DNA from: Octopus bimaculoides
Lineage: Eukaryota
NCBI RefSeq assembly: GCF_001194135.2
Contig: NC_068989.1
Location: 48,293,607-48,357,606, forward strand
DNA length: 64,000 bases
Reading direction: 5' to 3'
A model generated the notes under the pieces. It was not told where the DNA came from and searched no databases. It worked only from the letters and a program-made list of their open reading frames with translations. The position numbers and the translations under genes are program-made. Shown here one piece after another: positions 14,169 through 63,913 of the stretch. Position 1 is the stretch's first letter. Each line of letters starts with the position of its first letter.

Positions 14169-15550
14169 GTCCAGAGATATTTTCCAATAAAAGTAACTTT
14201 CTATGTATCTATCTAGCAATATATCAAGCTATCTATCGACTTAGCTCTATTTTGTCCATGTATCTAGCTATCTACCTTGTCTGATAATACAGATAAACAC
14301 ATAAACCCAGTATGAAATAAAAACTTAACAACAATAGTTCTCTCATTTAGATGTGCCCAAGGATATTTATTAAGATTACTAAACTTTAATTTAGTTATCT
14401 CTCTATCAACCAAAACTATGCATTTATCGATCAATTAATATTTCTGTCTATATATTTATCTAGAGATAATATTTAAGAAAGAGACCTCAATATTATGTAA
14501 ATAGAGGAATTTATCTGTAAATAATATGTGACAATTATTTACAGATATATATATATATATATATAAATGAATGATTTATACCTGGTAGCTTACTGGTAAA
14601 GCACGGTCACTTTNNNNNNNNNNNNNNNNNNNNNNNNNNNNNNNNNNNNNNNNNNNNNNNNNNNNNNNNNNNNNNNNNNNNNNNNNNNNNNNNNNNNNNN
14701 NNNNNNNNNNNNNNNNNNNNNNNNNNNNNNNNNNNNNNNNNNNNNNNNNNNNNNNNNNNNNNNNNNNNNNNNNNNNNNNNNNNNNNNNNNNNNNNNNNNN
14801 NNNNNNNNNNNNNNNNNNNNNNNNNNNNNNNNNNNNNNNNNNNNNNNNNNNNNNNNNNNNNNNNNNNNNNNNNNNNNNNNNNNNNNNNNNNNNNNNNNNN
14901 NNNNNNNNNNNNNNNNNNNNNNNNNNNNNNNNNNNNNNNNNNNNNNNNNNNNNNNNNNNNNNNNNNNNNNNNNNNNNNNNNNNNNNNNNNNNNNNNNNNN
15001 NNNNNNNNNNNNNNNNNNNNNNNNNNNNNNNNNNNNNNNNNNNNNNNNNNNNNNNNNNNNNNNNNNNNNNNNNNNNNNNNNNNNNNNNNNNNNNNNNNNN
15101 NNNNNNNNNNNNNNNNNNNNNNNNNNNNNNNNNNNNNNNNNNNNNNNNNNNNNNNNNNNNNNNNNNNNNNNNNNNNNNNNNNNNNNNNNNNNNNNNNNNN
15201 NNNNNNNNNNNNNNNNNNNNNNNNNNNNNNNNNNNNNNNNNNNNNNNNNNNNNNNNNNNNNNNNNNNNNNNNNNNNNNNNNNNNNNNNNNNNNNNNNNNN
15301 NNNNNNNNNNNNNNNNNNNNNNNNNNNNNNNNNNNNNNNNNNNNNNNNNNNNNNNNNNNNNNNNNNNNNNNNNNNNNNNNNNNNNNNNNNNNNNNNNNNN
15401 NNNNNNNNNNNNNNNNNNNNNNNNNNNNNNNNNNNNNNNNNNNNNNNNNNNNNNNNNNNNNNNNNNNNNNNNNNNNNNNNNNNNNNNNNNNNNNNNNNNN
15501 NNNNNNNNNNNNNNNNNNNNNNNNNNNNNNNNNNNNNNNNNNNNNNNNNN

Positions 15551-31933: not shown

Positions 31934-32005
31934 ATGGCGTTATTATTACACAAAATAAGGCATGCGACCGTTTCTGACTGTGAAGACATTGTCCGTCTCC
32001 TGCAG
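31934..32005 (+). CDS. SAT-like copy 1, coding exon 1 (MALLLHKIRHATVSDCEDIVRLLQ)
   Basis: ATG at 31934; 72 nt ending CAG|gtattt. IRHATVSDCEDIVRLL matches the SSAT N-terminal IRPATAADCSDILRLI motif. Confidence 0.9.
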
Positions 32006-35000
32006 GTATTTATTTATATAACAGCAGTTTCCCCAACATTTTCACCTCGGCACAAATGTACAATAATGAAAAAAGTTCTAGAAGAAAAACAGCGTTTAAT
32101 TTTTTAAATATTTGATAAATGTTAAGATGTTTATTAATGTTGTTATGCAATAAACCTCCAGCTGAGCAATAACAAAACGATTACTGTACCGAACACTTAA
32201 CATTCGGTGATTTTTGGCGGGAATGACGGAAGCCTGGGATAGCTTACCCATAGAAGTAGGATTTTCTCCGTTTTGACGGAGATTTTTCTCTTTCTTTTTT
32301 CTTTTTTTTTTTTCTTTTTTTTCACAACACACATTTAAAATGATAGGGTAAAGCATCTTATGAAAACAAAGTTTTGTGTGCGGGAAGTAAAAGACTTTTT
32401 CAAATATTTTCTTTAAAAAATATTTGGATCTTTTTTAAAACGGGGGCCACATTTTTCATTAACGAAACACTTTGAAACTTGGAACACTGGTAGAATGTGT
32501 CATATAAAACATCTTTTTCTCTTAGTCTTCTTTAAAAAAAAAAGAAATCCCTAAGTTATTCCATGTTAAAGTTGTCGTATTTCTGTAATTTCAACCAATC
32601 ACTGACGTCCATTCAGCTGATATACATTAAGTGCCGACTACATAAACAAACGATTCTGAAACAATTCTATCGGTGATAGGGTTAGGGTTAGGGTTAGGGT
32701 AAAACAGCAAATTTAAAAAGAAAAAAGCAAATAAAACGAAGAAAAAAAAAGAAAATGAAAAAAGCAAATAAAACGAAGCTATGGCTTAATCAGCCAAAGG
32801 AGTAAATGTAAACAACTGAATACTTGTCAGTGATTGGTTGAAATTATCGAAATAAGACAATTTTTTACATGAAATAAATTCGAATACAAAAATATTTTCT
32901 GTTCTATAACACAAAATAGATAAGTATACGAAGTTTGAAAGTCTTTCGGTACCAAAAACACTACGTAAAACATTAATGAAAAATGTGGCCCCCGTTTTAA
33001 AAAAGATCCAAATATTTTAATCATTTGATAAAATCTTTTTAGTTAGTGGACACTTATTTTATGTTATTTTTATTTTTATTTTGATCTTTATTTATTTTAT
33101 ATTTGTCCATTAGGCTTTTTGGTAGTTTTGAATTTTTAGTCATTATATTTAACTTTTAATAAGCTGTTCTATTTGTATTTCATTAGAATATATATTTTTA
33201 CATTCTGTGATTTTATGTGTATGTATTATTTTTTTATGTGTTTGTAGACCATGGTGTTTTTTTATATATGATTAAATGTTTGAAGGGTAGTGTTGTATGT
33301 AAAGTCATTGACCCAAATTTAATGTTTGTTTTATAACCAATGGTTCTTTATACATATATACACATATGTATATATGTGATATCTTAATCTTGGTTCTTTA
33401 TACATATATATACATATGTATATATGTGCTATCTTAATCTTTTTGATGTGACTCTATACTGTTTTCTCCCCCATCGTGTTCTCTCCCATCCTTTTCTCTA
33501 ATTCCCTTTTTCTCCCCTCCACCATTTTCTATGTGTGTCTCTCTCTCCCCCTCTTTCTCGTTTTCTCTCTCTCATTGCTCACATGTGACCAATGTCCATC
33601 TTTCTTTTCCTTACACGATCATCTTTCTTTTCCTTCAGGACTGTCCAAACGACTGGATGTATTTATCTCTCTCTTCTGTCATTTCTTTTGTCAAAGAAAA
33701 TATTTCTCCAGCATTCGCTATTTAATCCTTGTTCTGATCTAATGATCCTCCATGTTTGTTTCCGTTCGGTTTCCTTGTATGTTTACGCTGTTCTGTTTCA
33801 GTTCCCAACTTTGACCCGCCATAAATCCCTCAAAAAACTGTGGTGAACTACCTTCACTCAATGGGCAAGGTTCAGAAACTCACTGCCTGGGTGCCACACA
33901 CTTTGAGCGAAAACAACAAAAATCAACCCTCCACAATCACTGCCAGATTGCTCGCTCAACATTGCTCAACACATGGTCACAGACAGTATTTTCTTTACTG
34001 CATTGTCACTGGCAATGGAAAATGGTTCCTTTATGCCAATATGAAGCAGTGAAAAGAATGGCTCAACCCCAGCAAACAAGTGATTCCACGAGCAAAACAA
34101 GACCTTCATCCTTGAAAGACCATGTTGTGTGTGTGGTAGGACTGGGAAAGCATAATTCATTACGAACTGCTTGAATACAACTAAACACTCAATGCGTATT
34201 CTACATTCAACAACTGCTCTGACTCAACAAAGCAATTCAGCAAAAAAGGCTGAATAGGTGAAATGGCATTCTTCTGCAACACATCACCAATCTGACCAAA
34301 GCCGCAATTCAAGAATTCTAATAGGAAGTGCTCCTTCATTCTCCAGACTCGGCACCATCAAATTTTCATCTCTTTCTCACTTTCAAACACTTTGTGTGGT
34401 TCGTCGTTCAGTAATGACATGGAACTGAGGGCTTGGTTGGATAAATTCTTTGAGTCAAGACCAGGAGATTTCTATTGCCAAGGCATCAAAAAAACCTATT
34501 GAACGATGGGAGGAAGTCATAAACAACAACAAAAAGTACATTATTGATTAGTTTGTTGTAGTTTTTTTGTTTAAAATAAATTTGAAAAAAAATGCTCTTG
34601 AATTATTCCTCAACCCAATATATTTTGAAAGAATTGGAAACGGGTGTTTAAATAACATAGGACTGAAGATTCTTGTTGAGATGGAAAGGAAAATGATAAT
34701 GATAATTCTAATGCTGCTTTTAATACTTATTTTTGGAGAAATTAATTTAAAAGCTGGAATTTTAATTTTTAAAATATTTTTTAAATATTTTGTGCTGCTC
34801 CATGTATCTTTTTCGTATTTTTATATATTTATTTATTTTTGGATGGTTTTTATCTTTTACTTGTGTCAATCATTGGACTGTGATCATGCTGGGGCACCGC
34901 CTTGAAGGGTTTTACTCAAATTGACCCCTTTATTTATTACATATTTTATTGGTCTCTTTTGCCGAACTGCTAAGTAATGGGAACATAAACCAACATCAAT

Positions 35001-35037
35001 TGTCAAGTGATGTGTGTAGGGTGGGTTCTAGCACAAC

Positions 35038-35099
<62 letters not shown>

Positions 35100-37029
35100 C
35101 ACACACATATATGATAGGTTTTCTTCCACACAGTTTCTGCTACCATATTCATTCACAAGACATTGGTCAACCTGATGCTACAGTTGAAGACACTGTGGAA
35201 CTGAACCCTAGACCACATGGCTGCAAAGTTAGCTTCTTGCCATATATCCATTGCCTTTTTTGGCATGGGTTGGACAGGTTGTCACAGTCAGAGTAAGTAC
35301 ATATTTGGTGGTACTGCTTACCTAGACAGATCAGGGTCTTCAGCTTTCTTGCATTTTACTTTTTGTTTGGTTTCTACAACTGGATGTCCTTTCTCACACC
35401 ACAGAGTATACTTTCTAGAGTGTACTGGGTGCTTTTTTTTTTCATAGCACCAACACTAGAGAGGTATTGTGTCCTTGACAAAACTGAAAGGTTCTCACAA
35501 CTTTACACTTTACAGAAAGTACTGGATATGTTTTTCATCACACTAGCACTAGAGAGGTAGCCATGTCCTTGACACAACTAAAGAAACCTCTTGCTCACTA
35601 GCTTTCTTAATAGAGTGAGCAACATTAATGATAGTCCTAAATGATTGTAATGAGAGTGGTATGTGATAAATGATGGAGAGATAGCAGTACTCAGTATTCT
35701 GAGATAAGCTTGCATATTGAAGGTAATTTCACAGAGAGGTAGAAATATGACAGAAGTTTATGTGGCCCAGGAGATAGGTCAAAGATCAAGGCCTAGTATG
35801 GGTGGGAGGAAAGAAATGTGCTGGTAGAATATGGAATAATGACTAACTGTACAAAAGGAGTTGTGGAAGAAGGGGTGAACATGGTACATATGATCCAATG
35901 TAGCCACCTGTGCAGAGACGATAGGATGGGCTGCAGTGGGGTGGTTAAGTGATGAGTGTTGTGGAAGGGAGGATGGCAATGTAGATGGGTCCTGTAGCAG
36001 TGATCAACACAAAGAAACATGAGGAATAGGGTCGTTATAGGTGCAATAGCATTCTTAGTTATACTGGAAGTAATGTATGGTAAAGAGTAAAGATCTCCTA
36101 CCATCCTTCACTACACCAGAATGTATAGTACAGTATGAATTGCATGGAGTGAATGATTAGAAGATGAGCAATAGGGCATGGGTGAAAGAATATTGTGTAT
36201 GACAAACTGAAGATGAATAGTGATGGCAAGGATGAGACAGTGCATTGTGTGATGAACATGAGAGACATCTGCTGCCATCTTTAGTTACACCAACAACAGT
36301 TTGAGAAGAAGATGCCAGTACCGCCTGAGTGGCTCTCATGCCAGTGGCACGTAAAAGCACCTACTACACTCTCGGAGTGGTTGGCATTAGGAAGGGCATC
36401 CAGCTGTAGAAACTCTGCCAAATCAGATTGGAGCCTGGTGTAGCCATCTGGTTTCACCAGTCCTCAGTCAAATCGTCTAACCCATGCTAGCATGGAAAGC
36501 GGACGTTAAACGATGACGATGATGATGATGATGGAGTGGTTGAGTGAAATGGATGAGAAACAAAAGGAATAGAGGCATGAGCAAAAAAGAGACATTGTGA
36601 CATTGGGGATAGTAATGTGGGTCATAAAAAGATGAGTGATAAGGATGTGTGATGCAAGAGATGAGAGCTATAGATGCAAGTGACAAGGGCAGTGAGTCAA
36701 ATGATATGGATGTTGGAGTAGTGAGAGATCATCAAAAAGGTTAACGGTATAGACTTGACGGTATATATGTATGTGCACATATATATATATATGTGCACTC
36801 ATGTACACACATGTAATGCTACCAGCCAATGTAATGTGGTCCTTTGTCATCTCCTCCTTGAAGTGTAACAGCTTCACATCTATCTTCACCACTTCATCTA
36901 GGCTTCATGTTTTTATTTAATATAAGTTATAAATTATAATGTAGAATCAAGTATCTAACAGTCTATAAATGATGAAGTAGATACATAATGTATTTGATGT
37001 ATTTTATAATTGGTAATCTAGATTTATTT

Positions 37030-37065
<36 letters not shown>

Positions 37066-40000
37066 GATAGATTGTGTGAATGATAATGTTCATAGTGTTT
37101 TTGAGTAGAATTTTTTCTTGTTAATACAAGGAACAAGAACAAACTGGAAAGAAGAGAAAACCACTTTCTGTTGATGGTAAGTTATTTTAAGCGGCCATAT
37201 TCAACCCAAATATTCTACCTGTTTTATGCTCAAACCAGACAAATCTGGCTTCTCACATCTACCTTATACACATCTACCTTATAGTGTCATTCTGAAAATA
37301 CACAATCATATCGAAATTTTGAAGTTATGAGATAAAGCATGATTCATTCAAAACAGCATGAATAAATAAGCATTGCATTTGACAGACTAATCTGAATACT
37401 AAAGGTTTAAAATGTCAAACAACACTGAAGTTCCATATCTTTGAATGTTAAAATTATATTGGGTTGGTTGCTAAATTTTCAATGACATTGAGAAGTTATT
37501 GTATGAGAAAAATGCATGTGAGACATGGATTTTTAACAGGTTAAGCAAAAGCATCTAGTTCAGTGGTTCCCAGCCTGGGGTCCACAGACCCCTGGTGGCC
37601 CGCAAAGGTAATACTGGGGATCTGTGAACTAAATTCAAAATTTTGTATGTATATATATATATATATATATATGTTGTTGGAACTCCGTCGCTTACGACGT
37701 CGAGGGTTCCAGTTGATCTGATCAACGGAACGGCCTGCTCGTGAAATTAACGTGCAAGTGGCTGAGCACTCCACAGACACATGTACCCTTAACGTAGTTC
37801 TCGGGGATATTCAGCATGACACAGTGTGACAAGGCTGGCCATTTGAAATACAGGCACAACAGAAACAGGAAGAAAGAGTGAGAGAAAGTTGTGGTGAAAG
37901 AGTACAGTAGGGTTCGCCACCATTCCCAGCCTTGTGGAGCTTTTAGNNNNNNNNNNNNNNNNNNNNNNNNNNNNNNNNNNNNNNNNNNNNNNNNNNNNNN
38001 NNNNNNNNNNNNNNNNNNNNNNNNNNNNNNNNNNNNNNNNNNNNNNNNNNNNNNNNNNNNNNNNNNNNNNNNNNNNNNNNNNNNNNNNNNNNNNNNNNNN
38101 NNNNNNNNNNNNNNNNNNNNNNNNNNNNNNNNNNNNNNNNNNNNNNNNNNNNNNNNNNNNNNNNNNNNNNNNNNNNNNNNNNNNNNNNNNNNNNNNNNNN
38201 NNNNNNNNNNNNNNNNNNNNNNNNNNNNNNNNNNNNNNNNNNNNNNNNNNNNNNNNNNNNNNNNNNNNNNNNNNNNNNNNNNNNNNNNNNNNNNNNNNNN
38301 NNNNNNNNNNNNNNNNNNNNNNNNNNNNNNNNNNNNNNNNNNNNNNNNNNNNNNNNNNNNNNNNNNNNNNNNNNNNNNNNNNNNNNNNNNNNNNNNNNNN
38401 NNNNNNNNNNNNNNNNNNNNNNNNNNNNNNNNNNNNNNNNNNNNNNNNNNNNNNNNNNNNNNNNNNNNNNNNNNNNNNNNNNNNNNNNNNNNNNNNNNNN
38501 NNNNNNNNNNNNNNNNNNNNNNNNNNNNNNNNNNNNNNNNNNNNNNNNNNNNNNNNNNNNNNNATATATATATATATATATATACATAAGGATAAGCATA
38601 TTAAAAGGGGTCCATGGGAAAACTCATTTAAATAAAAGAGTTGGGAACCACTGATGTAATTAAAATTCTTTCATAGAAAGTTTTGCTGTATGATACATCT
38701 AGTGGTCCAAGTCAAATAAACTTGGTCTTACCTGTGTGATGTTTCTTTGTAATCTGCATAGATTAAAGGCAAAAGAAATCACAAGCCAACCCCAAATCTA
38801 ATTTTGCTATCAAAATTATATCTTTTACTTGTTACAGTCGTTTGGCTGCGGCCATGCTGGAGCACCCACCTTCAAGAATTTTTTGAGTCGAATGAATTGA
38901 TCCCATTACTTTTTTAATGTCTGTCAAAGCCTGGTACTTATTCTATCAGTTGCTGTTACCAAACTGCTATGTTACGGGGATGTAAACACACTCGCACCAG
39001 TTGTCAAGCAGACATACACACACCCACACACACAGGTGTATGTGTGTGTATATATATGTATGTATATATGACAGGCTTCTTTCAGTTTCTGTCTACCAAA
39101 TTCACTCACAAGGGTTTGGTCAGCTTAGGGCTATAGGAGCTATGCAGTGCCATAGGAGCCAAGGTGCTATGCAGTGGGACTAAACCCAGAACCACCTGAT
39201 TAAGAAGCAAACTTCTTACCACATAGGCATGCCTATGCTTATGATGCTCAAGTTTGTCTAAAATATAGCAATTCACTCTCAGTCTTGAATTATGACTAGG
39301 AAATAATACCTATGGTTTAACTCAAATTATTCAGTCCTGTATAGTTTTGACACTTGGGGTTACTCTTTGAGCATTGAGCATGTTATATTTAGAAAATGCA
39401 ACTGACACTAATCTTTCGTCTATAAAGCTAACAGTAATCATTCACCTATTTACAGATAGCATTTATGTCATGCCTATGACACAGATGCTAATACTAATCA
39501 TAGTTTTGTTGTGACACCTTGAGCTAACACTAATCATTCATCTTTGTCATAAGTATGACACTTATCAGTTAACATTGATCATTCAATCATATATATATAT
39601 ATATATATATATATAGATAGATATATATATATATATATATATANNNNNNNNNNNNNNNNNNNNNNNNNNNNNNNNNNNNNNNNNNNNNNNNNNNNNNNNN
39701 NNNNNNNNNNNNNNNNNNNNNNNNNNNNNNNNNNNNNNNNNNNNNNNNNNNNNNNNNNNNNNNNNNNNNNNNNNNNNNNNNNNNNNNNNNNNNNNNNNNN
39801 NNNNNNNNNNNNNNNNNNNNNNNNNNNNNNNNNNNNNNNNNNNNNNNNNNNNNNNNNNNNNNNNNNNNNNNNNNNNNNNNNNNNNNNNNNNNNNNNNNNN
39901 NNNNNNNNNNNNNNNNNNNNNNNNNNNNNNNNNNNNNNNNNNNNNNNNNNNNNNNNNNNNNNNNNNNNNNNNNNNNNNNNNNNNNNNNNNNNNNNNNNNN

Positions 40001-43000
40001 NNNNNNNNNNNNNNNNNNNNNNNNNNNNNNNNNNNNNNNNNNNNNNNNNNNNNNNNNNNNNNNNNNNNNNNNNNNNNNNNNNNNNNNNNNNNNNNNNNNN
40101 NNNNNNNNNNNNNNNNNNNNNNNNNNNNNNNNNNNNNNNNNNNNNNNNNNNNNNNNNNNNNNNNNNNCTATATATATATATATATATATATCTATATATA
40201 TATATATATATATAGAGAGAGATATATATATACAAACATATATATATCTGTGTTTGTCCCCCTGCCAATTTGGTAGGTCTGGTGTTTTGTCACTTGCCAG
40301 AAATATTTCCATATCATCTATGTGTCTATTGTTTGAACTCTTAGTGCACAATATCAAATTTCTAGGTTTCTCTGTCATACATGTTGATCAGTATTATTAT
40401 TACTTATTACATTGGGATCGTTGGGAGGTTGGTGTTGCTGCCTGGGTAAACTGGTTGGGAGCACGTGGTTAGGGTTTCTTCATTGGAATGAATTGTTGGG
40501 GTGCTTAACTATGTTTGGAATGCTGGGGAGCTGGTTGTGCTGTCTGGATAAATCGGATGAGGATCCGTAGGCCGAGTTTCTTCATTGAGGGGTAAAGGGG
40601 ATCTCTTGGATGTTTCTAGTTGCTGGGGAGCAAAAATTACTCCTAACTCTAGGTTAGTTTCTTCTAATGTTTCTAATTGGTGAGTAGTCCTTGTTATTAG
40701 ATAGAGAATGGTTTACTTCTAAGCAATGGCTCAGTTTTATGTGTTTGTGTTCTTTTGGATGTTGATTGTTTGATTTAGGTGGACGTGTATTTATTTCTGT
40801 AGATGCATTTGTTCTGGATTTTTTTAGGAAGGGGTTATCTGAAGTGTTGTCTCTTTTAAATTGAGCTTCATAACTAAGGAAGAAATTAACACTGTTTTCC
40901 CATCATTGCAGGGAATTTATTTCTTCCGACTCACAGCTGTCTTTCCATAGTTTTATAACACTTTCCAAAACTTGTTCATCAGCATGTTTAGTGAGTTCGG
41001 TGAGCATTTCTTCATCAATCGTTTTATATTTTTGTTTATTATTCGATGCTCTGAGTTTGAGTATATAAAAAAATAAATGCACCCTTTTAAAGCCTAGCCA
41101 GGCTCATGGGCCCGGTTTCCCAGTTTGTATGGCGTATGTGTTCCCCATCTGGACGGGACACCAGTCCATTGCAGCATTACTCATTTTTGCCAGCTGAGTG
41201 GACTGAAGCAATGTGAAATGAAGTGTTTTGCTCAAGAACACAACGCATCGCCCAGTCCAGGAATCGAAACCACAATCTTACGATCATGATGCCAACACCC
41301 TAACCACTAAGCCACGTGCCTCCTACATTTTTCCTAGTGCTAATTTCTCCCCAAGTTTACTTTGCTGTTCGGGTTCTTGTGGGATTGGTTTAATTTGTAG
41401 TTTGCGTGGTAGAATTAAAGGTGTTGAGTTAATCCATTTTTCATATATTTCTGCTTTACTGTTATTTTTTATCATGTTCCAAAATTAAAATTTTCTAGCG
41501 TTAAGATTTTTTAACCAAATATGGCTAATGCGACTTTTAATTAAACATGCTGACATTGGTATATTTTCGTTATGGTTTAGGTATTTTGGTGATGAATCTT
41601 TTTCAAAGTTATTTGCGAAAAATGAATGCAGTGTTGTGCATAGCTCGTTCAAACTTTGACTAACTAATCGTAAAGTTGGAAATGGCTCAGAGATCCAGTG
41701 TAATATATGAACCATGTTCTGTTCTGGTTTAAACCCTTACTGTATATTCTGTCATATTTCATTTGACTTCATCTGATGCAAAATTATTTCACACAAACAC
41801 CCTCCACCTTGGTCAGATAAATAATGGCTCTGCTTGAGACTGAGTAGAACTATTATTTACCCAGTTAACTGTTGTAATAAGCATTACTGTAAATTGTTCC
41901 AGCGTTCTTTGATTACAGATATATCCATTTTATTTCTTGAAAGTGAAAACAAGAACATGCCAAAGAATGTAACAGTCAGTTGTCATTTCAGTGACTATGT
42001 GGGATGCTGTTTTATTAGTTCAACTAAATTTCCTAATTTTCTCTGTAAAATATTTCCCTATGATTGGTGTTATTTAATCCGGCCATATCCAGCCCAAATA
42101 TTCTACCTGTTTTATGTTAAAACTGACCAGATTTAACCTCTCACACCTTTCCTACAATGTCATTCTAAAAATATACAAGCACACCTTTGAGATCCTGAAG
42201 TTACTTGATAATGCATGATTAATTCAAAATAATTTGAATAAATAAACATTACATTTAACAAAGAAATCTGAACGCTAAAGAATTAAGGAAGTTTATACCA
42301 AACCTTTATCTATTTGTTAACAAATGCTATATCACAAATGTTTTCATTAGTTAAAAAATGTCTGGAGTTCTCTATTAACTTCTCAAATTTCTTTTAGTTT
42401 CCTAACACAAAGCTGAATAAGATATGATGTGACAACAAACCTTTTATCCAAAAACATAGTTTTCAGATGTTAAACTACTTTCTCTACAAACCGTTCCTTC
42501 TCTCAACAATTCAGTTTCTCACAATTTACAGTTATGGTAGATGAAGAAACAAGCTAATGGTTGTATTTTTATATCTACTGTGCTTCAGAGCTAAAAACCC
42601 ACTGCTTTGATGGAGAGAACTCTTTTAATATCCTCATTGCTGAAATGAATAATAAAGATTCTTCTAAAAGTAAGTGTTATTGAAAAATTTTCTTAAATAT
42701 TTTTTGCATCTTCTGTTGCAGAATCCAGTTTTTTTTTGGTTTTTTTTTTACATATAAACCATAAGTGTCTAGCAATGGCATTTAATGCTGGTTTCTTATT
42801 GTCCCAACAAATATTATAGGTGATGCTCCTCATTACAAATGGGTTTTCACTGAAGATTTAGCATGGATAGTCATTTCTTCAAACAAGAGCAATACATACT
42901 AAGCCCACCAAATATTGATGTTGAGAAATTCTGCTGTTTAAACAAAAATATTAGGAGGTACTCCTGTATTCAGACAATAGGAAATGCTCTTCTATCCAGA

Positions 43001-44122
43001 CAGTGTCAATAGAAGGTACTCCTGTATTTAAACAGAGATATTAGGAGATACTCTTCTACCCAGACAGGAACAGTAGGAGATATTCTTCTGTTCAAACAAA
43101 GATAATTGGAGATACTCCTGGCTGAGCTGATAAATATACACCTTAGTTCAGACTGTGACAATGGGTGATGGTCAATTATTTAGGATAATACAATAGGGGA
43201 GATGTATCAAGACAATAGGAGATGCCTCTGTGTTGAGAAAGAGAGGCGCATGGCTTAGTGGTTAGGGTTTTAGACTCATGATCGAAAAATTGTGGTTTCA
43301 ATTCCTGGACCAAGCAACATGTTGTGTTGTTGCTCCAGTCCACTAAGCTGGCAAAAATAAGTAATCCTGTAACAGACCAGCGTTCCATCCATGTGAGGAA
43401 TATATACTCATGTAACCAGGAAACCAGCCCTTATGAGCCAGTATGACACGAGAAGGTAACTTTACCTTACTTTTTTACCCTTCTGTTCATTTCAATAGTT
43501 TATAGGTTTATAGGTATCATTTCATGAGTAATCATCCCTCTAACCATTCGGTAGGTCTGGTGTTTTGTCACTTGCCAGAAATATTTCCATATCATCTATG
43601 TGTCTATTGTTTGAAGTCTTAGTATACAATATCAAATTTCTAGGTTTCTCTCTCATACATATTGATCAAGGCCAAAATACTTAAAGCTACTCTCTACCCT
43701 ACACCTTACTCCCTTTATTTTTGCCATCTTTCATTTTTTTATTTGTTTCGGTCATTATACTGTGGCCATGCTGGGGCACCACTTTGAAGAATCTTTAGAT
43801 GAATGAATCGATACTAGTACTTTTTTTTTAAGCCTGGTATTTATTCTGTCATTCTCCTTTGCTGAACTGCCAAGTTCTTGGGACATAAACAAACCATCAC
43901 CAGTTGTCAAACAGTGATGGGAGGCAAACACAGGCACAAAGATACATACATAGATATATGTATGGTACAGGCATGGCTGTGTGGTAAGAAGCTTGCTTCC
44001 CAACTACATGGTTCCAGGTTCAGTCTCACTGTGTGGAACCTTGAGAAAGTGTCTTCTATTATAGCCTCAGGTCAACCAAAGCCTTGTGAGTGGATTTGGT
44101 AGATGGAAACTGAAAGCCCATC

Positions 44123-44188
<66 letters not shown>

Positions 44189-46868
44189 TGAGTCGTCTAA
44201 GGGACCATAAGTTAGGGAGAAGATGCACTCATATAACTGTTAGTAGAGTAGGTATATTATCTGAATTCTATACTGGAGGATCCTAGAAAGATACAAGCTG
44301 TATTTCAATAGTAGCAAGAATTGCAGATTATGCCTGGCTGAGAAGAGAACGATTTTAAAAGGTACCCAACGCCCAGATGTTTACCAGAATAGCAGGAGTG
44401 AAGTGTTTACTCCTTGTCCGCATGAAAGAAAGTACATTTATCATGCCTGTGCAACCCACCATGACTGCAACCACAGGTCCCCTGCCTTGACCTTCTGCAA
44501 ATGACCAATACCCTATATATATATATGTATGTATGAATGTACAACCTTAACTAACACAGAAAGAAAACACTTTAGCAAACACAGCAATGGATGCCTACAA
44601 CCCCTGTAAAAAGTTATACGTACAGTACCACCATACATATCCCATTTCCACATGAACACCAACCTGAAAGATGCACACAATTCCCACAAATACTTCAGGA
44701 TAGCTCTTACCGACTTATAGCATAAGCAACCCAGTGGCAACGTCTCGGTACCAAGGGACATAATTCTTAATTATATCCCCTACCCAGTTCATTTCATCTT
44801 TTCACAGCAACCACAAAATATTCTTGTTAATAACTTTGATGTCTCGTTTACAGATGACAACAACATTCCATTGGTTGGCTATCTCCTCTACAACTATCAC
44901 TTCTGTGTATTTGACTCCAAGAGTTTACGAATCACTGATGTCTATGTCTCTGAAGTCACAGAACATAAAGAAAACATCTTGAGAGATCTTGTTGGCCATT
45001 TAGTCAAGGTATTGTTTGTAAGTACATACATACTTATGTGCTTACATTCTCTTTCTCTTTTTAATTTAGAATGAATTTTCATCGCCCACCAAGGTTGTGA
45101 AGGAAAGCATCTTGTTTTGTTCATCATTCTTTAATTCAGAAGTTCTTTCAGATTTTTATAGTCCCAGATATTGTAATCATTTGTAGCATATAGATTAAGG
45201 ATTTGTGTTCTCTCCCCAAGAACCAAGTTCAAATTTACTTTGCTCCAGATGGGTTTATATGTATCCTGTTGTTCCAATAATAATAGATATGAAACTGAAA
45301 GTGTATCTTTGATACTGAATTTGTGAACTTTTTATCAATGGTCCATAAATGTCCTCTTTCTCTTGCCTTGTATTTTTCTAACCACACTGATGTCCAGAGG
45401 GCAGCTGATTTTCATAACAGAACATATATTGGATCTTGTTCAAAACGGGGGCACCAGTATTTTCTTAACGAAACACTTTGAAACTTGGGACACTGGTAGA
45501 ATGTGTCATATAAAACATCTTTTTCTCTTAGTCTTCTTAACAAAAAAACGTACATTGCAAGTTATTTCATGTTAAAGTTGTCGTATTTCTGTAATTTCAA
45601 CCAATGACTGACGTCCATTCAGCCGAATACATTAAGTGCTGACTACGTAAACAAACGATTCTCAAACGATTCTGGCGGTGATAAAATTATTATTTCCTTG
45701 TCAAAAAATGGCTGAAGCATATTGGCAGTAGCNNNNNNNNNNNNNNNNNNNNNNNNNNNNNNNNNNNNNNNNNNNNNNNNNNNNNNNNNNNNNNNNNNNN
45801 NNNNNNNNNNNNNNNNNNNNNNNCCATTTAAACTGCCAAAGGAGTAAGTATAAACAGCTGAATACTTGTCAGTGATTGGTTGAAATTATCGAAATAAGAC
45901 AATTTTTTACATGAAATAAATTCGAATACAAAAATTTTTTTCTGTTCTATAACACAAAATAGATAAGTATACGAAGTTTGAAAGTCTTTCGGTACCAAAA
46001 ACACTACATAAAACATTAATGAAAACTGGTGCCCCCGTTTTGAACAAGATCCCATATATTTTCCTCGTAGTCCCACACAACAATATCTCGCCAGTTTTAC
46101 TTGATGTTTTAATTTTTAAGTTCCACCAATATTCTTTTAACCCACCAGTCTCAATAGAAACAACTACAACTTAGTCTGTAGGCGTTTTCTTTATTGTTAT
46201 CCTGTTACTGACTGTTCTAGCTACTGCATCATACCCCATGGAAAGATAATATCTGGAAGACAGTCTCTTGCAGTCAGCAATGATGTGATTGGTGTCTTCA
46301 GTCTTGGTCTTGCACAATATGCATTTTTGTTTTTCTGTCAGTGTTTTCTGTCTTTTATACTTGGTGGGGATCTCTTCTTCTTGAATTGCATGAGTGTAGC
46401 CTTCAAAATGGGATATCATAAACTTGTTGCTACTCTATGCTAAGCTTTTGACATAATCAGTTCCTTCTATGTTTTGTTTTTTCTGCTAAATACCCATGTA
46501 TTATCTTCTCAGTGAACTGGTTCATTTCATTTTATTTTTCTCTTCTGATAAATAGATTTTATCAATACTCTTTGGAGAGAGACCTGCTTCATACCACTCC
46601 TCAAATTCACTAGCAAACTATTAAAAAATGTTTCTATTCCATACTTTCATTGTGTACAACTCACCAGTATAATCTCAAGTAGATATATTTCTATATTCAG
46701 ATGTCTGTACAGGAAGAGTGTGACCACATAAGATGGACTGTAGGGAACAACAACTATCTTGAAAACATTACCAAATATTTTGAAGCATTTAATATGTCAA
46801 AGGATGATGGTTGGTTCTTTTTCAAACTTGGAAAATCTCAAGTGGATGTAATTAACAAAGGAAGTTAA
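31934..46868 (+). CDS. SAT1/SAT2-like: Divergent diamine/spermidine-spermine N1-acetyltransferase-like (GNAT) gene, copy 1; join(31934..32005,37131..37176,42589..42669,44854..45008,46701..46868); 522 nt, 173 aa
   Basis: Five exons with GT-AG introns join in frame to MALLLHKIRHATVSDCEDIVRLLQEQEQTGKKRKPLSVDELKTHCFDGENSFNILIAEMNNKDSSKNDNNIPLVGYLLYNYHFCVFDSKSLRITDVYVSEVTEHKENILRDLVGHLVKMSVQEECDHIRWTVGNNNYLENITKYFEAFNMSKDDGWFFFKLGKSQVDVINKGS*. It is colinear with human SAT1 as recalled (IRPATAADCSDILRLIKE...CLVAE...IVGFAMY...LEDFFV...EEGWRLFKI; 171 aa), with intron phases 0,1,1,0 at equivalent positions. Confidence 0.9.
32426..33009. mobile_element. Unclassified MITE, GGATC termini, 8-bp TSD (intron 1 of SAT-like copy 1)
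   Basis: About 36-bp TIRs ggatcttttttaaaacgggggccacatttttcattaa; perfect TSD aaatattt. Confidence 0.85.
32677..32700 (+). repeat. Short interstitial (TTAGGG)n tract
   Basis: tagggttagggttagggttagggt. Confidence 0.9.
33830..34618 (+). mobile_element. Mariner transposase remnant
   Basis: GKVQKLTAWVPHTLSE, CIVTGNGKWFLY, MLCVW.D...IHYELL, SPDSAPSNFHLF; right TIR followed by TA. Confidence 0.85.
36285..36520 (+). mobile_element. RTE-type LINE 3' end or RTE-tailed SINE
   Basis: aggaagggcatccagctgtagaaac...aacccatgctagcatggaa..cggacgttaaacg followed by a (GAT)n tail. Confidence 0.6.
37131..37176 (+). CDS. SAT-like copy 1, coding exon 2 (EQEQTGKKRKPLSVD, phase 0 to 1)
   Basis: ttttttcttgttaatacaag|GAACAAG...GTTGATG|gtaagt; 46 nt; clear paralogue at 63868-63913. 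Confidence 0.9.
37190..37412 (+). mobile_element. piggyBac-like MITE family copy, 14 bp downstream of the exon 2 donor
   Basis: Colinear with 48585-48805; ends ctaaaggtttaa. Confidence 0.65.
37561..38653. mobile_element. hAT (Charlie-type) MITE with a nested minus-strand SINE (about 37672-37946) and an N-gap
   Basis: TIRs cagtggttcccagcct / agttgggaaccactg; TSD atctagtt/atgtaatt (6 of 8). Confidence 0.7.
40272..41760 (-). mobile_element. Penelope-like element N-terminal remnant, interrupted by a SINE
   Basis: Minus-strand peptide IYEKWINSTPLILPRKLQIKPI resembles PLE N-termini; terminal 119 bp repeated at 43550-43668. Confidence 0.45.
41086..41323 (-). mobile_element. SINE family C (tRNA head, CORE-like and V-like blocks)
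   Basis: Reverse complement begins ggaggcacgtggcttagtggttagggtg; contains cagtccactcagctggcaaaaatgagtaat. Confidence 0.85.
42589..42669 (+). CDS. SAT-like copy 1, coding exon 3 ([E]LKTHCFDGENSFNILIAEMNNKDSSK, phase 1 to 1)
   Basis: gtgcttcag|AGCTAAAA...TCTAAAA|gtaagt; 81 nt; aligns to SAT1 DLLEDGFGEHPFYHCLVAE. Confidence 0.88.
43243..43470 (+). mobile_element. SINE family C
   Basis: gaggcgcatggcttagtggttagggt...cagtccactaagctggcaaaaataagtaat...cccttatgagcca. Confidence 0.85.
44854..45008 (+). CDS. SAT-like copy 1, coding exon 4 ([N]DNNIPLVGYLLYNYHFCVFDSKSLRITDVYVSEVTEHKENILRDLVGHLVK)
   Basis: tctcgtttacag|ATGACAAC...GTCAAG|gtattg; 155 nt; overlaps track ORF 44871..45074; aligns to SAT1 [26 protein letters not shown]...LKNLSQ. 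Confidence 0.9.
45431..46052. mobile_element. GGATC-terminal MITE, second full copy (intron 4 of SAT-like copy 1)
   Basis: TIRs ggatcttgttcaaaacgggggcaccag / ctggtgcccccgttttgaacaagatcc; perfect TSD catatatt; internal sequence colinear with 32426-33009. Confidence 0.85.
46075..46560 (-). mobile_element. R4/Dong-type LINE C-terminal (CCHC) fragment
   Basis: Track ORF: AIQEEEIPTKY...CILCKTKTEDTNHIIADCKRLSSRYYLSMGYDAVAR. Confidence 0.7.
46701..46868 (+). CDS. SAT-like copy 1, last coding exon (MSVQEECDHIRWTV...DDGWFFFKLGKSQVDVINKGS*)
   Basis: tttctatattcag|ATGTCTGTA...AGTTAA; 168 nt; aligns to SAT1 VAMRCRCSSMHFLV...SSEEGWRLFKIDK. Confidence 0.9.
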   Translation: MSVQEECDHIRWTVGNNNYLENITKYFEAFNMSKDDGWFFFKLGKSQVDVINKGS

Positions 46869-47616
46869 TTTAATAGTGATAACCAATTTTATCTTCNNNN
46901 NNNNNNNNNNNNNNNNNNNNNNNNNNNNNNNNNNNNNNNNNNNNNNNNNNNNNNNNNNNNNNNNNNNNNNNNNNNNNNNNNNNNNNNNNNNNNNNNNNNN
47001 NNNNNNNNNNNNNNNNNNNNNNNNNNNNNNNNNNNNNNNNNNNNNNNNNNNNNNNNNNNNNNNNNNNNNNNNNNNNNNNNNNNNNNNNNNNNNNNNNNNN
47101 NNNNNNNNNNNNNNNNNNNNNNNNNNNNNNNNNNNNNNNNNNNNNNNNNNNNNNNNNNNNNNNNNNNNNNNNNNNNNNNNNNNNNNNNNNNNNNNNNNNN
47201 NNNNNNNNNNNNNNNNNNNNNNNNNNNNNNNNNNNNNNNNNNNNNNNNNNNNNNNNNNNNNNNNNNNNNNNNNNNNNNNNNNNNNNNNNNNNNNNNNNNN
47301 NNNNNNNNNNNNNNNNNNNNNNNNNNNNNNNNNNNNNNNNNNNNNNNNNNNNNNNNNNNNNNNNNNNNNNNNNNNNNNNNNNNNNNNNNNNNNNNNNNNN
47401 NNNNNNNNNNNNNNNNNNNNNNNNNNNNNNNNNNNNNNNNNNNNNNNNNNNNNNNNNNNNNNNNNNNNNNNNNNNNNNNNNNNNNNNNNNNNNNNNNNNN
47501 NNNNNNNNNNNNNNNNNNNNNNNNNNNNNNNNNNNNNNNNNNNNNNNNNNNNNNNNNNNNNNNNNNNNNNNNNNNNNNNNNNNNNNNNNNNNNNNNNNNN
47601 NNNNNNNNNNNNNNNA

Positions 47617-49381: not shown

Positions 49382-51170
49382 CAGTAGGCCCCTGGTATTC
49401 GCGGGAGTTACATTCCTAGAGCACCCACCTGCAAATAGTGTAAAACCGCGAATATTAGACGCGGTCCATAAAAATGCCTATAAATGTTAAAATATACAGT
49501 AAGATATTATAAGTATACATATGTGTATATTTATATATATTTAATGATAATTTAATAAAAAATAAAGCAAAATGCACAGTTATTCACCAATAATGAATGA
49601 TATTGATTTAAGACAATGATGACAAAAATAATGAAAGTAATGACTGCACAGCAAAGTAGATTTAAAGCTCTTCAGGTGTTCTAGGGGATGTTGTACCTTT
49701 ATGCAAGGCTTTCTTGGTGGGGTTGAGGAACATTGTGATGGGATGTTGCTGTCATTGTTTCTTCATGGTGGTGAGGAGAGTTTTATATGTCTGTATGGCA
49801 GCATCAATGGCATTTTTAAATTAGAGAGACCAAACCATATAGGGATCTCATGCTTCCACCTTCCCTTGCAATTCCTTTTCTGTTCTTAAAAGGTCGGACA
49901 GACGTTTGATTGCTAGGTTCACCTCATCCTCCTCTTCCTCAGGATCTGGTGCTTCCTCCTCTTCACTGGCAGATTTCCTTAACTCCAACAAATCTTCGTC
50001 TGTTTCAGAGTGGGCATCGATGACGTCGTTGACCTCATCTTGTGTGATGTTGTCAAAACCTTCACCACCAAGTACCTTTGCCAGTTTCATTGCATTGTTG
50101 ACAGCTACATGCTGAATATCTTCAGGTGAGAAGCTTTCATAGTCAGGGACACACTCTGGCCTCACCTTCTTCCAGCATGCGATGAGGGTTTCTCTTCTCA
50201 TGTCATTAAGAGTAGCATGGATGACTGACAGGCATGTTGTGACCGTGAAGTTACACCAGTACTCCTTTAACTTGAAATTGTTATTTGAATCCATTGCATC
50301 CACAAGGTATTGGAGAGAGTTCCAAGTGTAAAGTGCCTTGAAGGCACGGATCACGCCTTGTTCCACAGGCTGGATGAGGGAGGTGGTGTTGGCAAAGAGT
50401 GACCACCAGCATTATCCATAACAAGCAACACCTTGAATTTCATGCAAACATTTTGGAGATATTCCTTGGCTTGAAGGATGAAGCATTGGTGGAACCAATT
50501 CAAAATTAAACTTTTGGTAATCCAGTCCTTGGAGTTGTGCATCCTGTGGACAGGCAGCAGGTTTTTATTTTTATTTTTGAAGGCCCTTGGGTTTGCGGAC
50601 TTGTAGATAAGTCCCGGTTTCACCATGAAGCCAGCAGCATTGCCACACATAATTAGCATCTTTCTGTTCCTTAAATCCTGGGGCTCTAGCTTCATCCTTC
50701 ATGATGTACATCCTGGAAGGCATTTTCTTCCAGAACAAACCAGTCTCATCCATATTGAAAACCTGTACTGGCTTGTATCCCTTGTGTTCAATGATCTGCC
50801 TAAAGGTCTCAAGGTACTTCTCGGCGGCTTGTTTGCCAGCTGATGCTGCCTTCTATGCAGGGAAACACACTTTATTTTAAACAGTTTCTGGAATCGGTCA
50901 AACCATCCCTTGCTGGTTTGAAAATCTTCGGGCTCCCATACTGTCAATGGTCTTGGTTGCAGTACTTCAGTGCTTTCTGCTTTGTCGAACTACTGGTATA
51001 ATTTCAGTGCTTTCTTGCAGATGATGTTATCACTCAAGATGATGCTTTGCAGTCACTGATCCACAATGCCAAGGCAGATTCCATCCTGATGAAGTGCTTA
51101 TTTCTCACCATCGTTATCTTTTTGGCACATTCACAGAAACTTTGGTGTATGGCAGGAAGAAATCAAACAA
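49382..51170 (-). mobile_element. Tigger/pogo (TIGD1-like) transposon remnant
   Basis: KGWFDRF, NMDETGLFWKKMPSR, CGNAAGFMVKPGLIY, LVMDNAGGH, IQPVEQGVIRAFKALY; TA+cagtaggcccctggtattcgcggg terminus; frameshifted. Confidence 0.9.
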
Positions 51171-55829: not shown

Positions 55830-58145
55830 AAAAAGAAAAAACACTGGTAATTGCGCAACCTGATAATCGCTACTTCATATGAGTAACAGTGAAAAAGCAA
55901 GATATTGTGAATAACAGTGGTAATGAAACCGAAGCCAATGATTGTGACAGTGTTACACCCGGTAGGCTCAGAGATTCTGGTCTCGCTACAGCCTATCGAT
56001 ATCCAGAAAGGGACCACCACACACGGCATAGATGGAGCAAGCAAATTAATGCTGTGTTCATGGAATGTTACTACCTGTGCAGCCCAGTAGATGAAAATGG
56101 TGCTCAAATTAGGGGTTACCGTCAACATATATATGATCATTGGAGAGAAAATGGATTGTTTCAACTCACGGAACAGAGATTATGTGATCAAGCTAGAACA
56201 ATAAGAAAAAACTGTTCACAGAAGTAGAGCTCGAAGCTATCAAAAGACGGGTCTTGGAAAATAGCAGCAGAAATAACGATGAAAATGCAGTTCTTACTAA
56301 TAAGAGTAATCTCATAGAACTGGAAAGGGGCTGTGGTAGTTTACCTGATGAAAGACATGTAGATGGTCTAAAAGAAGACAATAAAACTAATGGCGACGTG
56401 ACAGATGAACAAAAGGCAATCTACAACAGAATAAAGGCAAGACTACAGGAGAACAATAGCGACATTATTTGGAACCTTAAAAAGGTTGATCGATGGAAAC
56501 TGAACCAATGTCAAGGAAATTCTGAAATGCATCAGAACAAACAACATCACAGAAACAAACAATTTGATCAAGGCAGCAAGTATTATTGTAGCAGAAAACG
56601 TGGGTGTTGATGTCAAGAAAAACAAACATAATGGGAGTGACAAGAGAAAAGACCCATGGTGGAAAAGAAGAATCCAGGCAGAGTTAGACATGCTCTCAAA
56701 GAAATCTCTGTGTTAGACTGAAAAGAGAAAGGGGAACTTAAAAGCAAACAAAAATACAGGGCGCTGAAAAGGAAGTATAATATTGAAAGAAAGTAGTAAT
56801 GGAGGAACTGAAACAGCACCTCGTTGCAAAGATGTTAAGATACGACCAAAGAATGAAGGGTTACCACCAGAATAGGTTATTCAGAGTAGATCAGAAGAGA
56901 TTCTATAAAGAAGTAAATGGAGAGTGTACAGATGAAAAGTTGATACCAGATAACAATGAAAGTCAAAGGTTTTGGAGTGACATCTGAAGCAAAGACAAGG
57001 AACACAAGGAGACTGAATGGTTGCAAGAACTGAAACAAACAGTAGTCTGTCCAAAACAGGCAGAACTAGTCATTTCAGTTAGGGAAGTGAAGGAAATCAG
57101 CAAAAAAATGAGCAACTGGAAGGCCCCGGGACCAGATGGAGTTCAAGGCTATTGGAACAAAAGATTTGGTGAATGACATGCACGAATAGCTGTGCAGCTC
57201 AACACCTTGTTAAACGCCAACCAAGTAACACCAGAGTGGTTGACATTGGGTAGGACAGTGCTGTGCCTGAAAAACATTGAAAAAGGCAATACGGTAGACA
57301 ATTACAGGCCGATATCCTGTTTGCCACTTATGTGGAAGTTATTGACAAGAATACTCACAGACTCAATGTACGAACAACTGGAAAAAAATGGAGTCCTGCC
57401 ACATGAGCAGAAGGGTTGCAAGCGTAAGTGCAGAGGTACAAAGGATCAACTCCTGATAGACAAAACTGTACTTAGAGACTGCAAGAGGAGCAAAAGTAAC
57501 TTAGCTATGCCATGGATCGACTATTGTAAGGCGTACAATATGATCCCACATTCTTGGATTATGGAGTGTATTGCATCAAATGTTGAGCGATTGCTTGGAA
57601 AAAGTATGGCAAATTGGAGGACGGACCTGACAGCATACGGAAGAAGTTTAGGGACAGTAGAATTTGGAGGAGCCCCTTCCAAGGGGACTGCCTGTCCCCA
57701 CTGATCTTTGTACTGTGCTTGATATCACTAACACTGATTTTGAGGAAAGCAAAAACTGGGTATGTATTCAAAAGCTGCCAACAAAAAATCAATCATTTGT
57801 TATTCATAGACGACCTCAAACTTTATGGTAAAGATGAAGCCCAACTCAGTTCCCTTGTTGATATGGTGTATACCTTCAGTGCTGATATCAGAATGGAGTT
57901 CAGACTGAGAAAGTGTGGTGTGTAAGTCTTGAAGAGAGGCAAAATCAAATGTATGGGCAAGCTAACAGTACCATCAGGAGAGGTTATGAAGCAGATGGAA
58001 GAGACAGGCTATAAGTACTTGGGGATTTTGGAAATGGATAAACTGATGGAGAAATAAATGACAGAAAAATTTAAGGTGAAGTACTTGCGCAGACTGAGAC
58101 TGATCCTTAAGTTGAAATTAAACGAACGAAATAAGATCTGTAAAA
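55830..58145 (+). mobile_element. R4/Dong-clade non-LTR retrotransposon, 5' region through RT (decayed, 3' truncated)
   Basis: RWSKQINAVFMECYY..GYRQ..TEQRLCDQARTIRKN; DPWWKRRI; NWKAPGPDG; [16 protein letters not shown]; [14 protein letters not shown]; [10 protein letters not shown]; HLLFIDDLKLY; YKYLGILE. Confidence 0.92.
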
Positions 58146-62429: not shown

Positions 62430-62498
62430 ATGATGGCAGTAACTGTTTCGCGGCATGCAATAGCTGATGACTGTGAACATATTATTGGTTTATTCAAG
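62430..62498 (+). CDS. SAT1/SAT2-like: SAT-like copy 2 (tandem paralogue), coding exon 1 (MMAVTVSRHAIADDCEHIIGLFK)
   Basis: ATG at 62430; 69 nt ending AAG|gtatgt. RHAIADDCEHIIGLF is homologous to RHATVSDCEDIVRLL of copy 1. Confidence 0.85.
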
Positions 62499-63867: not shown

Positions 63868-63913
63868 GAACAAGTAAAATCTGGAGAAAAGAAAAACCCA
63901 CCTTCTGTGGATG
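63868..63913 (+). CDS. SAT-like copy 2, coding exon 2 (EQVKSGEKKNPPSVD); gene continues beyond the window
   Basis: ttttggttctcaatactag|GAACAAG...GTGGATG|gtaagt; same 46-nt length and phases as 37131-37176, with similar acceptor flank. Confidence 0.87.

Follow-up and report, generated by a model that had tools for sequence, protein, structure and literature searches.

An SSAT-derived gene of Octopus bimaculoides that has lost its acetyltransferase active site: a candidate pseudoenzyme within a degenerate cephalopod family

Gene A and its gene model

Gene A lies in a 64,000-nucleotide stretch of Octopus bimaculoides DNA (NCBI RefSeq assembly GCF_001194135.2, contig NC_068989.1, positions 48,293,607 to 48,357,606 of the forward strand), which is called the window below and in whose numbering coordinates are given unless another locus is named. 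An earlier sequence-only reading of this DNA had proposed an intact, non-catalytic gene derived from the polyamine acetyltransferase SSAT, and thus a candidate pseudoenzyme. This proposal is upheld by the homology of the protein to SSAT, by its predicted fold, by the loss of five of five diagnostic active-site residues, and by a ratio of nonsynonymous to synonymous substitution rates (dN/dS, or omega) of 0.3-0.5.

Five exons at 31934-46868 (+) make up the 173 codons of gene A, with exons 4 and 5 at 44854-46868. The open spliced frame and canonical splice sites described previously were found again: the frame is 522 nt long and stop-free, its translation is identical to RefSeq XP_052826633.1 (isoform X4, P0002), and all four introns run from GT to AG. 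A search with the peptide encoded by exons 4 and 5 retrieved the RefSeq cluster XP_052826630-33 (isoforms X1-X4), whose members are named 'thialysine N-epsilon-acetyltransferase-like' or 'SSAT-like protein 1'. Exons were mapped with the 182-amino acid (aa) isoform X1 (P0004); the 173-aa isoform X4 is the model of the sequence-only reading, and is the only gene A isoform collinear with SSAT. The features of the gene are as follows.

31934..32005, + strand: gene A exon 1, with the ATG; codons 1-24, MALLLHKIRHATVSDCEDIVRLLQ; GNAT beta1/alpha1; donor GT
37131..37176, + strand: gene A exon 2; codons 25-39 plus 1 nt, EQEQTGKKRKPLSVD; AG/GT
42589..42669, + strand: gene A exon 3; codons 40-67, split at both ends, ELKTHCFDGENSFNILIAEMNNKDSSK; AG/GT
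44854..45008, + strand: gene A exon 4; codons 67-118, beta3-beta4-alpha3, encoding ...SLRITDVYVSEVTEHKENILRDLVGHLVK; T94 at 44934-36, and E103-R110 (EHKENILR, without Gly) at 44961-44984
45009..45017, + strand: 9-nt extension of exon 4 to an alternative GT donor, adding 'VLF' in RefSeq X1 and X3
45420..46063, no strand: foldback insertion of 644 bp in intron 4, resembling a miniature inverted-repeat transposable element (MITE-like)
45733..45823, no strand: assembly gap of 91 N in intron 4, at the centre of the foldback element
46683..46700, + strand: 18-nt extension of exon 5 to an alternative AG acceptor, adding 'IYFYIQ' in RefSeq X1 and X2
46701..46868, + strand: gene A exon 5; codons 119-173, encoding MSVQEECDHIRWTVGNNNYLENITKYFEAFNMSKDDGWFFFKLGKSQVDVINKGS, followed by the stop codon TAA (46866-68); T142 at 46770-72, and GWFFFK at 46809-46826

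The alternative exon 4/5 junctions used in isoforms X1-X3 insert 3, 6 or 9 residues within the predicted helix alpha3, and are probably splicing noise.

The 91-N gap begins 724 nt past the exon 4 donor and ends 877 nt before the exon 5 acceptor, and since it is intronic it has no effect on the reading frame provided that exons 4 and 5 are adjacent. In the gap-free O. vulgaris assembly (OX597822.1, A/B locus at 10001-46336, referred to here as L001), all five exons occur with order, strand and frame unchanged and with GT-AG introns, exons 4 and 5 being 2.8 kb apart. Gene A spans 14,935 bp in the O. bimaculoides chromosome record (L003), as it does in the window, which fits derivation from the same assembly and so provides no independent check on this gap. 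The foldback element surrounding the gap has outer inverted arms of 42 nt (93% complementary) and inner arms of 67 nt (75%), and its terminal 28-mer occurs within the window at the two arms only. It is without a counterpart at the orthologous O. vulgaris site, where positions 45421-46056 correspond to only 238 bp (blastn, intron 4). It is plausible that a hairpin-prone insertion of this kind caused the break in the assembly. A second gap, of 719 N (46897-47615), starts 28 nt past the gene A stop, so that the 3' untranslated region and polyadenylation signal are unread in the assembly.

SSAT descent and the lost active site

Comparison of the full gene A protein with the PDB using phmmer gave mouse SSAT1 (3bj7) with E=3.8e-9, collinear over residues 6-164 against 4-162, followed by human SSAT1 and SSAT2 at approximately 6e-8; in all, seven SSAT1/2 sequences were matched at or below 8.5e-8. 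The SSAT/GNAT homology presumed earlier therefore extends from end to end of the protein. The fold was examined with an AlphaFold2 (AF2) monomer model built from an 11-sequence family alignment (mean pLDDT 73, pTM 0.71), in which the order beta1-alpha1-alpha2-beta2-beta3-beta4-alpha3-beta5 was predicted with good confidence. When this model was searched against the PDB with Foldseek, ranks 1-22 were all SSAT1, SSAT2 or thialysine acetyltransferase, the best match being SSAT1 (E=5.5e-13) and the TM values 0.6-0.7, in agreement with the SSAT fold that had been proposed. Gene A and SSAT1/SSAT2, which are its best structural matches, are collinear over their full length, are 23-24% identical and are both about 170 aa long. 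They share R7, D13-C14, V-G-Y, G-K, D93 and the C-terminal G-W strand-swap motif; in exon 1, SAT1 R7 and D13-C14 are retained as R9 and D15-C16. The gene A protein is by descent a member of the SSAT branch of the GNAT superfamily.

In other respects the gene A protein departs from SSAT1 and SSAT2, as it is without E92, R101, G102, G104, G106, W132, Y140 and R142/R143, its loop between beta4 and alpha3 is one residue longer, its alpha1-alpha2 loop is shortened and basic, and it is undetected by Pfam Acetyltransf_1 (PF00583). No Pfam family matched the 173-aa or the 182-aa isoform at E<=10, and the exon 4 and 5 peptide was likewise without a match. The residues were mapped to SAT1 in HMMER and MAFFT alignments, which agreed with each other.

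SAT1 E92: T94 in gene A
SAT1 D93: D95, kept
SAT1 R101: E103, followed by an inserted H104
SAT1 G102: K105
SAT1 G104: N107
SAT1 G106: L109
SAT1 W132-N133: N134-N135, N133 itself being kept
SAT1 Y140: T142
SAT1 R142/R143: Y144/F145
SAT1 G153-W154: G155-W156, kept; 'GWFFFK' against the SAT1 strand-swap GWRLFK

The motif A of GNATs, Q/R-x-x-G-x-G/A, forms the loop that holds the pyrophosphate of coenzyme A (CoA). At this site the gene A loop reads E-(H)-K-E-N-I-L, with R101, G104 and G106 all replaced, and no motif-A glycine is left whether the alignment is gapped or ungapped, as had been claimed. The ungapped pairing with SAT1 on which that claim was first based is correct up to the loop, but is off by one after the H104 insertion, in beta4-alpha3. 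We take E92 and Y140 of SAT1 to be the catalytic base and acid, and R101 and R142/R143 to have functional roles as well. Both alignments place T94 and T142 at the positions of E92 and Y140, as proposed, and the C-terminal GWFFFK strand is indeed kept, with G155-W156 at the position of G153-W154. A Tyr140Phe change has been found to abolish SAT1 activity (PMC7271128). None of the five diagnostic residues (E92, R101, G104, G106 and Y140) is kept in gene A, and among 109 SSAT-type domains (all hits) a count of 0/5 was seen only in octopod A and its neighbouring paralogue B, whereas canonical domains keep 4-5.

The substrate site has changed as well. In SAT1, Y27, E28, E32, D82 and W84 presumably line the polyamine channel. 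The first three of these belong to the alpha1-alpha2 segment ELAKYEYMEEQ, which in exon 2 of gene A is replaced by the shorter basic segment EQEQTGKKRK, while D82 is replaced by C and W84 by F, leaving gene A without most of these residues.

An alternative exon 4 that would restore RGxGxG, a possibility raised in the sequence-only reading, was looked for by tblastn with four SSAT-family proteins, namely three canonical SSATs and the octopod paralogue C (P0095). None of the three loci searched (the window, the gap-free O. vulgaris locus L001 and the Argonauta locus) yielded such an exon encoding a canonical motif A. Gene A fails as an SSAT enzyme on motif A, on the E92/Y140 pair and on the Pfam Acetyltransf_1 gathering score. 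Its predicted product fits the operational definition of a pseudoenzyme (PMC10211241), and canonical acetyl transfer would probably be impossible for it.

Cephalopod relatives, selection and expression

An exhaustive HMMER search of 1.84 billion representatives yielded 73 relatives, the closest of which are all from cephalopods; a word-based homologue search with the exon 4 and 5 peptide had returned only gene A's own cluster. The cephalopod relatives include orthologues from O. vulgaris and O. sinensis, Argonauta hians orthologues of both A (P0007) and B (P0008), and the SRA-derived proteins P0010, P0015 and P0019. Paralogue B is located on the same strand as gene A, 15.5 kb downstream of it, and extends beyond the end of the window. 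It shares 44% sequence identity, exon sizes and phases with A, and keeps 0/5 of the diagnostic residues.

62430..62498, + strand: paralogue B exon 1, MMAVTVSRHAIADDCEHIIGLFK; full protein P0082, UniProt A0A0L8G6L6
63868..63913, + strand: paralogue B exon 2, EQVKSGEKKNPPSVD plus 1 nt; length and phase as in gene A exon 2

Paralogue C (P0095, P0090, P0013) is a third octopod copy. In O. vulgaris it is found at 63.3 Mb of OX597822.1 (L005), on the chromosome that carries A and B and approximately 59 Mb from them, with no other SSAT-like genes within 10 kb. It is without E92, G106 and Y140, keeps R101 and G104 and passes the Pfam GNAT threshold; of the genes in the genome, it is the strongest candidate for a partner that could bind CoA. 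In Sepia pharaonis, P0009 ('speG', 318 aa) contains two complete degenerate SSAT-like domains. The second of these begins with its own Met right after the end of the first, and P0009 is more suggestive of two tandem genes merged during annotation than of a genuine two-domain protein. Sepia also has a canonical SSAT (P0020; CAE1281408), in which VED, RKIGMG, DWN and FYKR are all present. A word-based search with this enzyme returned no octopod protein; its closest match was P0096, at 67% identity, from SRA run SRR32601320.

A neighbour-joining tree (200 bootstraps) gave 98% bootstrap support to a degenerate cephalopod clade that excludes gastropod, insect, human and Sepia canonical SSATs, 100% to A+B, 96% to A and 100% to B. 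These groupings indicate that A and B were duplicated before the split of Octopus and Argonauta. Members of the clade have 'EQ' instead of 'EL' after exon 1 (P0019 has 'ES'), and the deletion that shortens the alpha1-alpha2 loop is common to A, B and the Sepia-type members. Intron phases are shared, with exons 2 and 3 of 46 and 81 nt, by A of O. bimaculoides, O. vulgaris and Argonauta and by B of O. vulgaris. The Argonauta A gene (L002) has an exon 4 of 230 nt (15071-15300) against 155 nt in Octopus, and its loop before beta3 is enlarged by an insertion of 25 codons of Ser/Asn-rich low-complexity sequence.

E92, W132 and Y140 are absent from every member of the degenerate clade. R101 and G104 are present in the C-type proteins, P0015 and P0019, and are lost in A, B and the Sepia-type proteins. 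The order of loss within the clade is E92, W132 and Y140 first, and motif A later, in the branch of A, B and the Sepia type. Scores against Acetyltransf_1 were 54 bits for the Sepia canonical enzyme, 33-36 bits per domain for the Sepia type, 24-32 bits for the C type and none for octopod A and B; no Pfam GNAT match was obtained at E<=1 for paralogue B or for the Argonauta A and B proteins. A comparison of isoelectric point and charge did not discriminate dead from live members. Outside the cephalopods, domains that keep no more than 1/5 of the residues were found only in two-domain proteins, each time alongside a canonical half. In these covalent pairs the degenerate half, which is C-terminal in P0021, P0054 and P0066 and N-terminal in P0046, has lost motif A and/or E92 and Y140. 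Gene A is one member of an old cephalopod family of degenerate SSATs, represented at this locus by a tandem pair.

Between O. bimaculoides and O. vulgaris, gene A shows 27 differences in 522 nt (dN=0.037, dS=0.128), giving an omega of 0.29 (NG86) or 0.51 (YN00). In a mutation simulation with the transition fraction held, 15 or fewer nonsynonymous changes were obtained in 2.7% of runs; nonsynonymous changes are thus rarer in gene A than expected under neutrality (P=0.027). The two Octopus species are 96.9% identical over exon 5 and its acceptor region, and 86-91% over aligned blocks of intron 4 (blastn). Comparison with Argonauta A gave dN=0.35, a saturated dS of about 1.1 and an omega of 0.32-0.48. 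The Argonauta gene has the same five exons and phases, with the open reading frame (ORF) and all splice sites intact. Third codon positions differ more often between the two (0.41) than do first and second positions (0.30; Fisher P=0.012), and in neutral simulations at K>=0.8, with substitutions only, the ORF stayed open in fewer than 1/1000 runs. A and B evolve faster than C, being 92% and 88% identical between the two Octopus species, against 98% for C. An omega near 1, which together with a lack of expression the sequence-only reading would have taken as a sign of a decaying gene, was not seen; the values are 0.3-0.5, and the ORF has been kept across a dS of about 1. Gene A is under relaxed but real purifying selection.

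No SRA-derived (Logan) proteins cluster with gene A, and no proteomic evidence for its protein was found. In the O. sinensis and O. vulgaris annotations exon 5 of A is omitted and A exons 1-4 are joined to B exons 2-5, or, in some of the products (set: P0006, P0078, P0080, P0089), A exons 1, 2 and 4 are used. Exon 5 is intact in O. vulgaris DNA (26553-26720 of L001, 96% identical). The joined products are in frame because genes A and B share their intron phases, and they represent either a conjoined transcript or an artefact of the models. Paralogue B corresponds to the published O. maya oviducal-gland 'SAT2' or 'Diamine acetyltransferase 2', since the primers used for its quantitative reverse-transcription PCR (RT-qPCR) map to B. 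Against the O. vulgaris B coding sequence, 1 mismatch was counted for the reverse primer and 3 for the forward primer; compared with O. bimaculoides B exon 2 (63895-63912), the first 18 nt of the forward primer differ at 1 position, and the predicted amplicon of 127 bp is equal to the published size (PMC8976471, Table 5 primers). In that study 'SAT2' was differentially expressed by RNA-seq, being up-regulated in mated females, with a qPCR trend that was not significant, and it was discussed as a change in polyamine 'synthesis' or spermine-spermidine metabolism (PMC8976471). SSAT is a catabolic enzyme, and an enzymatic reading of the O. maya 'SAT2' is doubtful. No mention of the UniProt, RefSeq and LOC identifiers of these genes was found in the literature, and neither a dead SSAT clade nor these cephalopod genes were described in the literature searched, beyond the O. 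maya mention.

The introns of gene A had been called transposon-laden, which could not be confirmed: the transposon ORFs found with Pfam support lie outside the gene, and in its introns only the foldback element, simple repeats and assembly gaps were seen. Transposon remnants flank the gene at 31029-31424 (-), 49848-50695 (-) and 57192-57704 (+). They comprise a mariner Transposase_1 fragment approximately 500 bp upstream of exon 1 and, between genes A and B, a frameshifted pogo/Tigger-type DDE_1 transposase and an RVT_1 reverse-transcriptase fragment. The window also contains tandem arrays at 4762-4940 and 14077-14168 (a 23-mer in 7.8 copies and a 19-mer in 4.8 copies) and many (TA)n- or (AT)n-like microsatellites, which adjoin most of its 14 assembly gaps. 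Rfam and tRNA scans of the window found nothing.

Interpretation and comparison with known systems

We consider it probable that gene A encodes a non-catalytic, selectively maintained protein derived from SSAT. SSAT functions as an obligate dimer: its subunits exchange a C-terminal strand, and the active sites lie at their interface. This architecture, together with the retention of the swap motif (GW-x-x-F is kept in A orthologues) and the recurrence of fused dead and live pairs, leads us to propose that the gene A protein may act as a non-catalytic dimer subunit. Its candidate partners would be itself, its neighbour B, the putatively CoA-competent paralogue C (P0095), or a canonical SSAT if octopods have one, and a dimer containing the dead subunit could titrate or tune polyamine or thialysine acetylation, in a prozyme-like or a dominant-negative manner. 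This mechanism is put forward tentatively, as possible rather than probable. It is unlikely, though conceivable, that the clade is older than the split of the octopus and cuttlefish lineages and consists of regulatory subunits of polyamine or thialysine acetylation, possibly in sperm-storing tissue; in a stronger version of this proposal, octopods may have lost canonical SSAT, with polyamine catabolism rewired around the degenerate proteins.

Several observations weigh against a maintained, non-catalytic dimer subunit. The loss of acetyl-CoA binding is read from the sequence, and some GNATs tolerate a deviant motif A. Residues 133-161 of the AF2 model, the region expected to form the swapped strand, are poorly predicted (pLDDT 41-56). 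The constraint is weak, with an omega of 0.3-0.5 and 53% identity to the Argonauta orthologue, and the loops that replace motif A differ among A, B and the Sepia type, with no new conserved site evident. The evidence for expression of gene A consists of RefSeq models from the same assembly, and the annotations of the other two Octopus species join it to B without its last exon. With regard to the partner, no octopod canonical SSAT was returned, so that a live canonical partner may not exist; the Sepia protein P0009 joins dead to dead, though possibly through annotation fusion; and the acidic residues of the polyamine channel have been replaced by basic ones.

The same observations bear on other explanations. 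Gene A could encode a non-catalytic binder or scaffold unrelated to polyamine acetylation, in which the GNAT shell has been re-used and only homodimers are formed, perhaps within secretions of the reproductive tract, or as an abundant structural component like the enzyme-crystallins. The loss of the CoA site and of most of the presumed polyamine-site residues, the basic alpha1-alpha2 loop, the two dead domains joined in the P0009 model, the failure of the word-based search to retrieve an octopod canonical SSAT and the expression of B in the oviducal gland would all be consistent with such a role, and mammalian SSAT1 and SSAT2 reportedly have protein-binding roles (integrin alpha9, HIF-1alpha/VHL). 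However, no conserved new surface or motif was identified, nothing ties gene A to the lens or another structural tissue or to abundance in a tissue, and D93 and the dimer-swap motif are still shared with the enzymes, so that we regard this explanation as rather unlikely. Crystallin-like recruitment, which had been suggested earlier, was dropped as a leading idea, as there was no evidence to support it and no pointer to it in literature searches.

It is improbable that the gene A protein is still an acyltransferase, using non-canonical residues or another acyl donor or acceptor, in which case the RefSeq name would be essentially right. The core of beta4 and beta5, which makes backbone contacts to the pantetheine arm, is predicted with high confidence, D95 (the equivalent of D93) is invariant, A and most B proteins have in common a Tyr two residues past the lost Y140 (K-Y-F), and catalytic residues can migrate, according to a review of pseudoenzymes (PMC10211241). 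Against this, all five diagnostic positions are lost along with R142/R143 and W132, the Pfam GNAT signal is nil, and the loop at the pyrophosphate site, which is not conserved among A, B and the Sepia types, has a one-residue insertion and three Glu that should repel the phosphates of CoA. Quite improbable, too, is a decaying duplicate, a pseudogene or near-pseudogene whose exons are carried in an A-B read-through and whose 173-aa ORF is functionless. An omega of up to 0.5 (YN00), the skipping of exon 5 with fusion of A to B in the O. sinensis and O. vulgaris annotations, the four junction variants at exons 4/5 in RefSeq and the failure of any Logan protein to cluster with A would be expected of such a gene, but O. 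bimaculoides, O. vulgaris and Argonauta hians all retain an intact ORF, eight intact splice sites and the same phases across a dS of about 1. An ORF left open under neutrality has a probability below 1e-3 (substitutions only), exon 5 is conserved above the flanking intron, and changes fall more heavily on third codon positions than on first and second ones.

The labels given by automated annotation, among them 'thialysine N-epsilon-acetyltransferase-like', 'diamine acetyltransferase 2-like' and 'speG', cast degenerate proteins as enzymes, and if these proteins are non-catalytic the inference on spermine/spermidine metabolism drawn from the up-regulation of B in O. maya needs revisiting (PMC8976471). 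The graded series from canonical SSAT through the C type and the Sepia type to octopod A and B is a natural series from GNAT enzyme to pseudoenzyme. SSAT is the rate-limiting enzyme of polyamine catabolism, and other steps of the pathway have repeatedly evolved dead regulatory paralogues.

GNAT folds that do not transfer acetyl groups are known from other subfamilies. Mycothiol synthase MshD and N-myristoyltransferase are two-domain GNATs with a non-catalytic half, and O-GlcNAcase has a pseudo-HAT domain; these are domains of larger enzymes, whereas gene A encodes a free-standing protein. Another comparison is with the invertebrate two-domain SSAT-like proteins (P0021, P0054, P0066, P0046), in which a dead module is recurrently paired with a live one. 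There the pairing is covalent, while in octopods each dead module has its own gene, and the tandem neighbours are dead alike. In functional terms, the polyamine pathway supplies the closest parallels, with antizyme inhibitor and the trypanosomatid prozymes. Antizyme inhibitor is a dead homologue of ornithine decarboxylase that acts by sequestering antizyme and, like the proposed gene A protein, is a polyamine-pathway pseudoenzyme in which the fold and a binding function exist without catalysis; its ligand is antizyme, and no equivalent ligand is known for the octopus protein. The trypanosomatid prozymes, inactive paralogues of AdoMetDC and of deoxyhypusine synthase, form hetero-oligomers with the live enzyme and activate it (PMC5201418, PMC3663545). 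Gene A resembles them as a dead paralogue of an oligomeric polyamine-pathway enzyme that has been selected alongside its paralogues, but differs in enzyme family and fold, and for gene A a heteromer, its activating effect and a live partner would be hypothetical. Should the degenerate cephalopod clade prove to be regulatory, it would represent a third independent instance of control by pseudoenzymes in polyamine metabolism, after antizyme inhibitor and the trypanosomatid prozymes.

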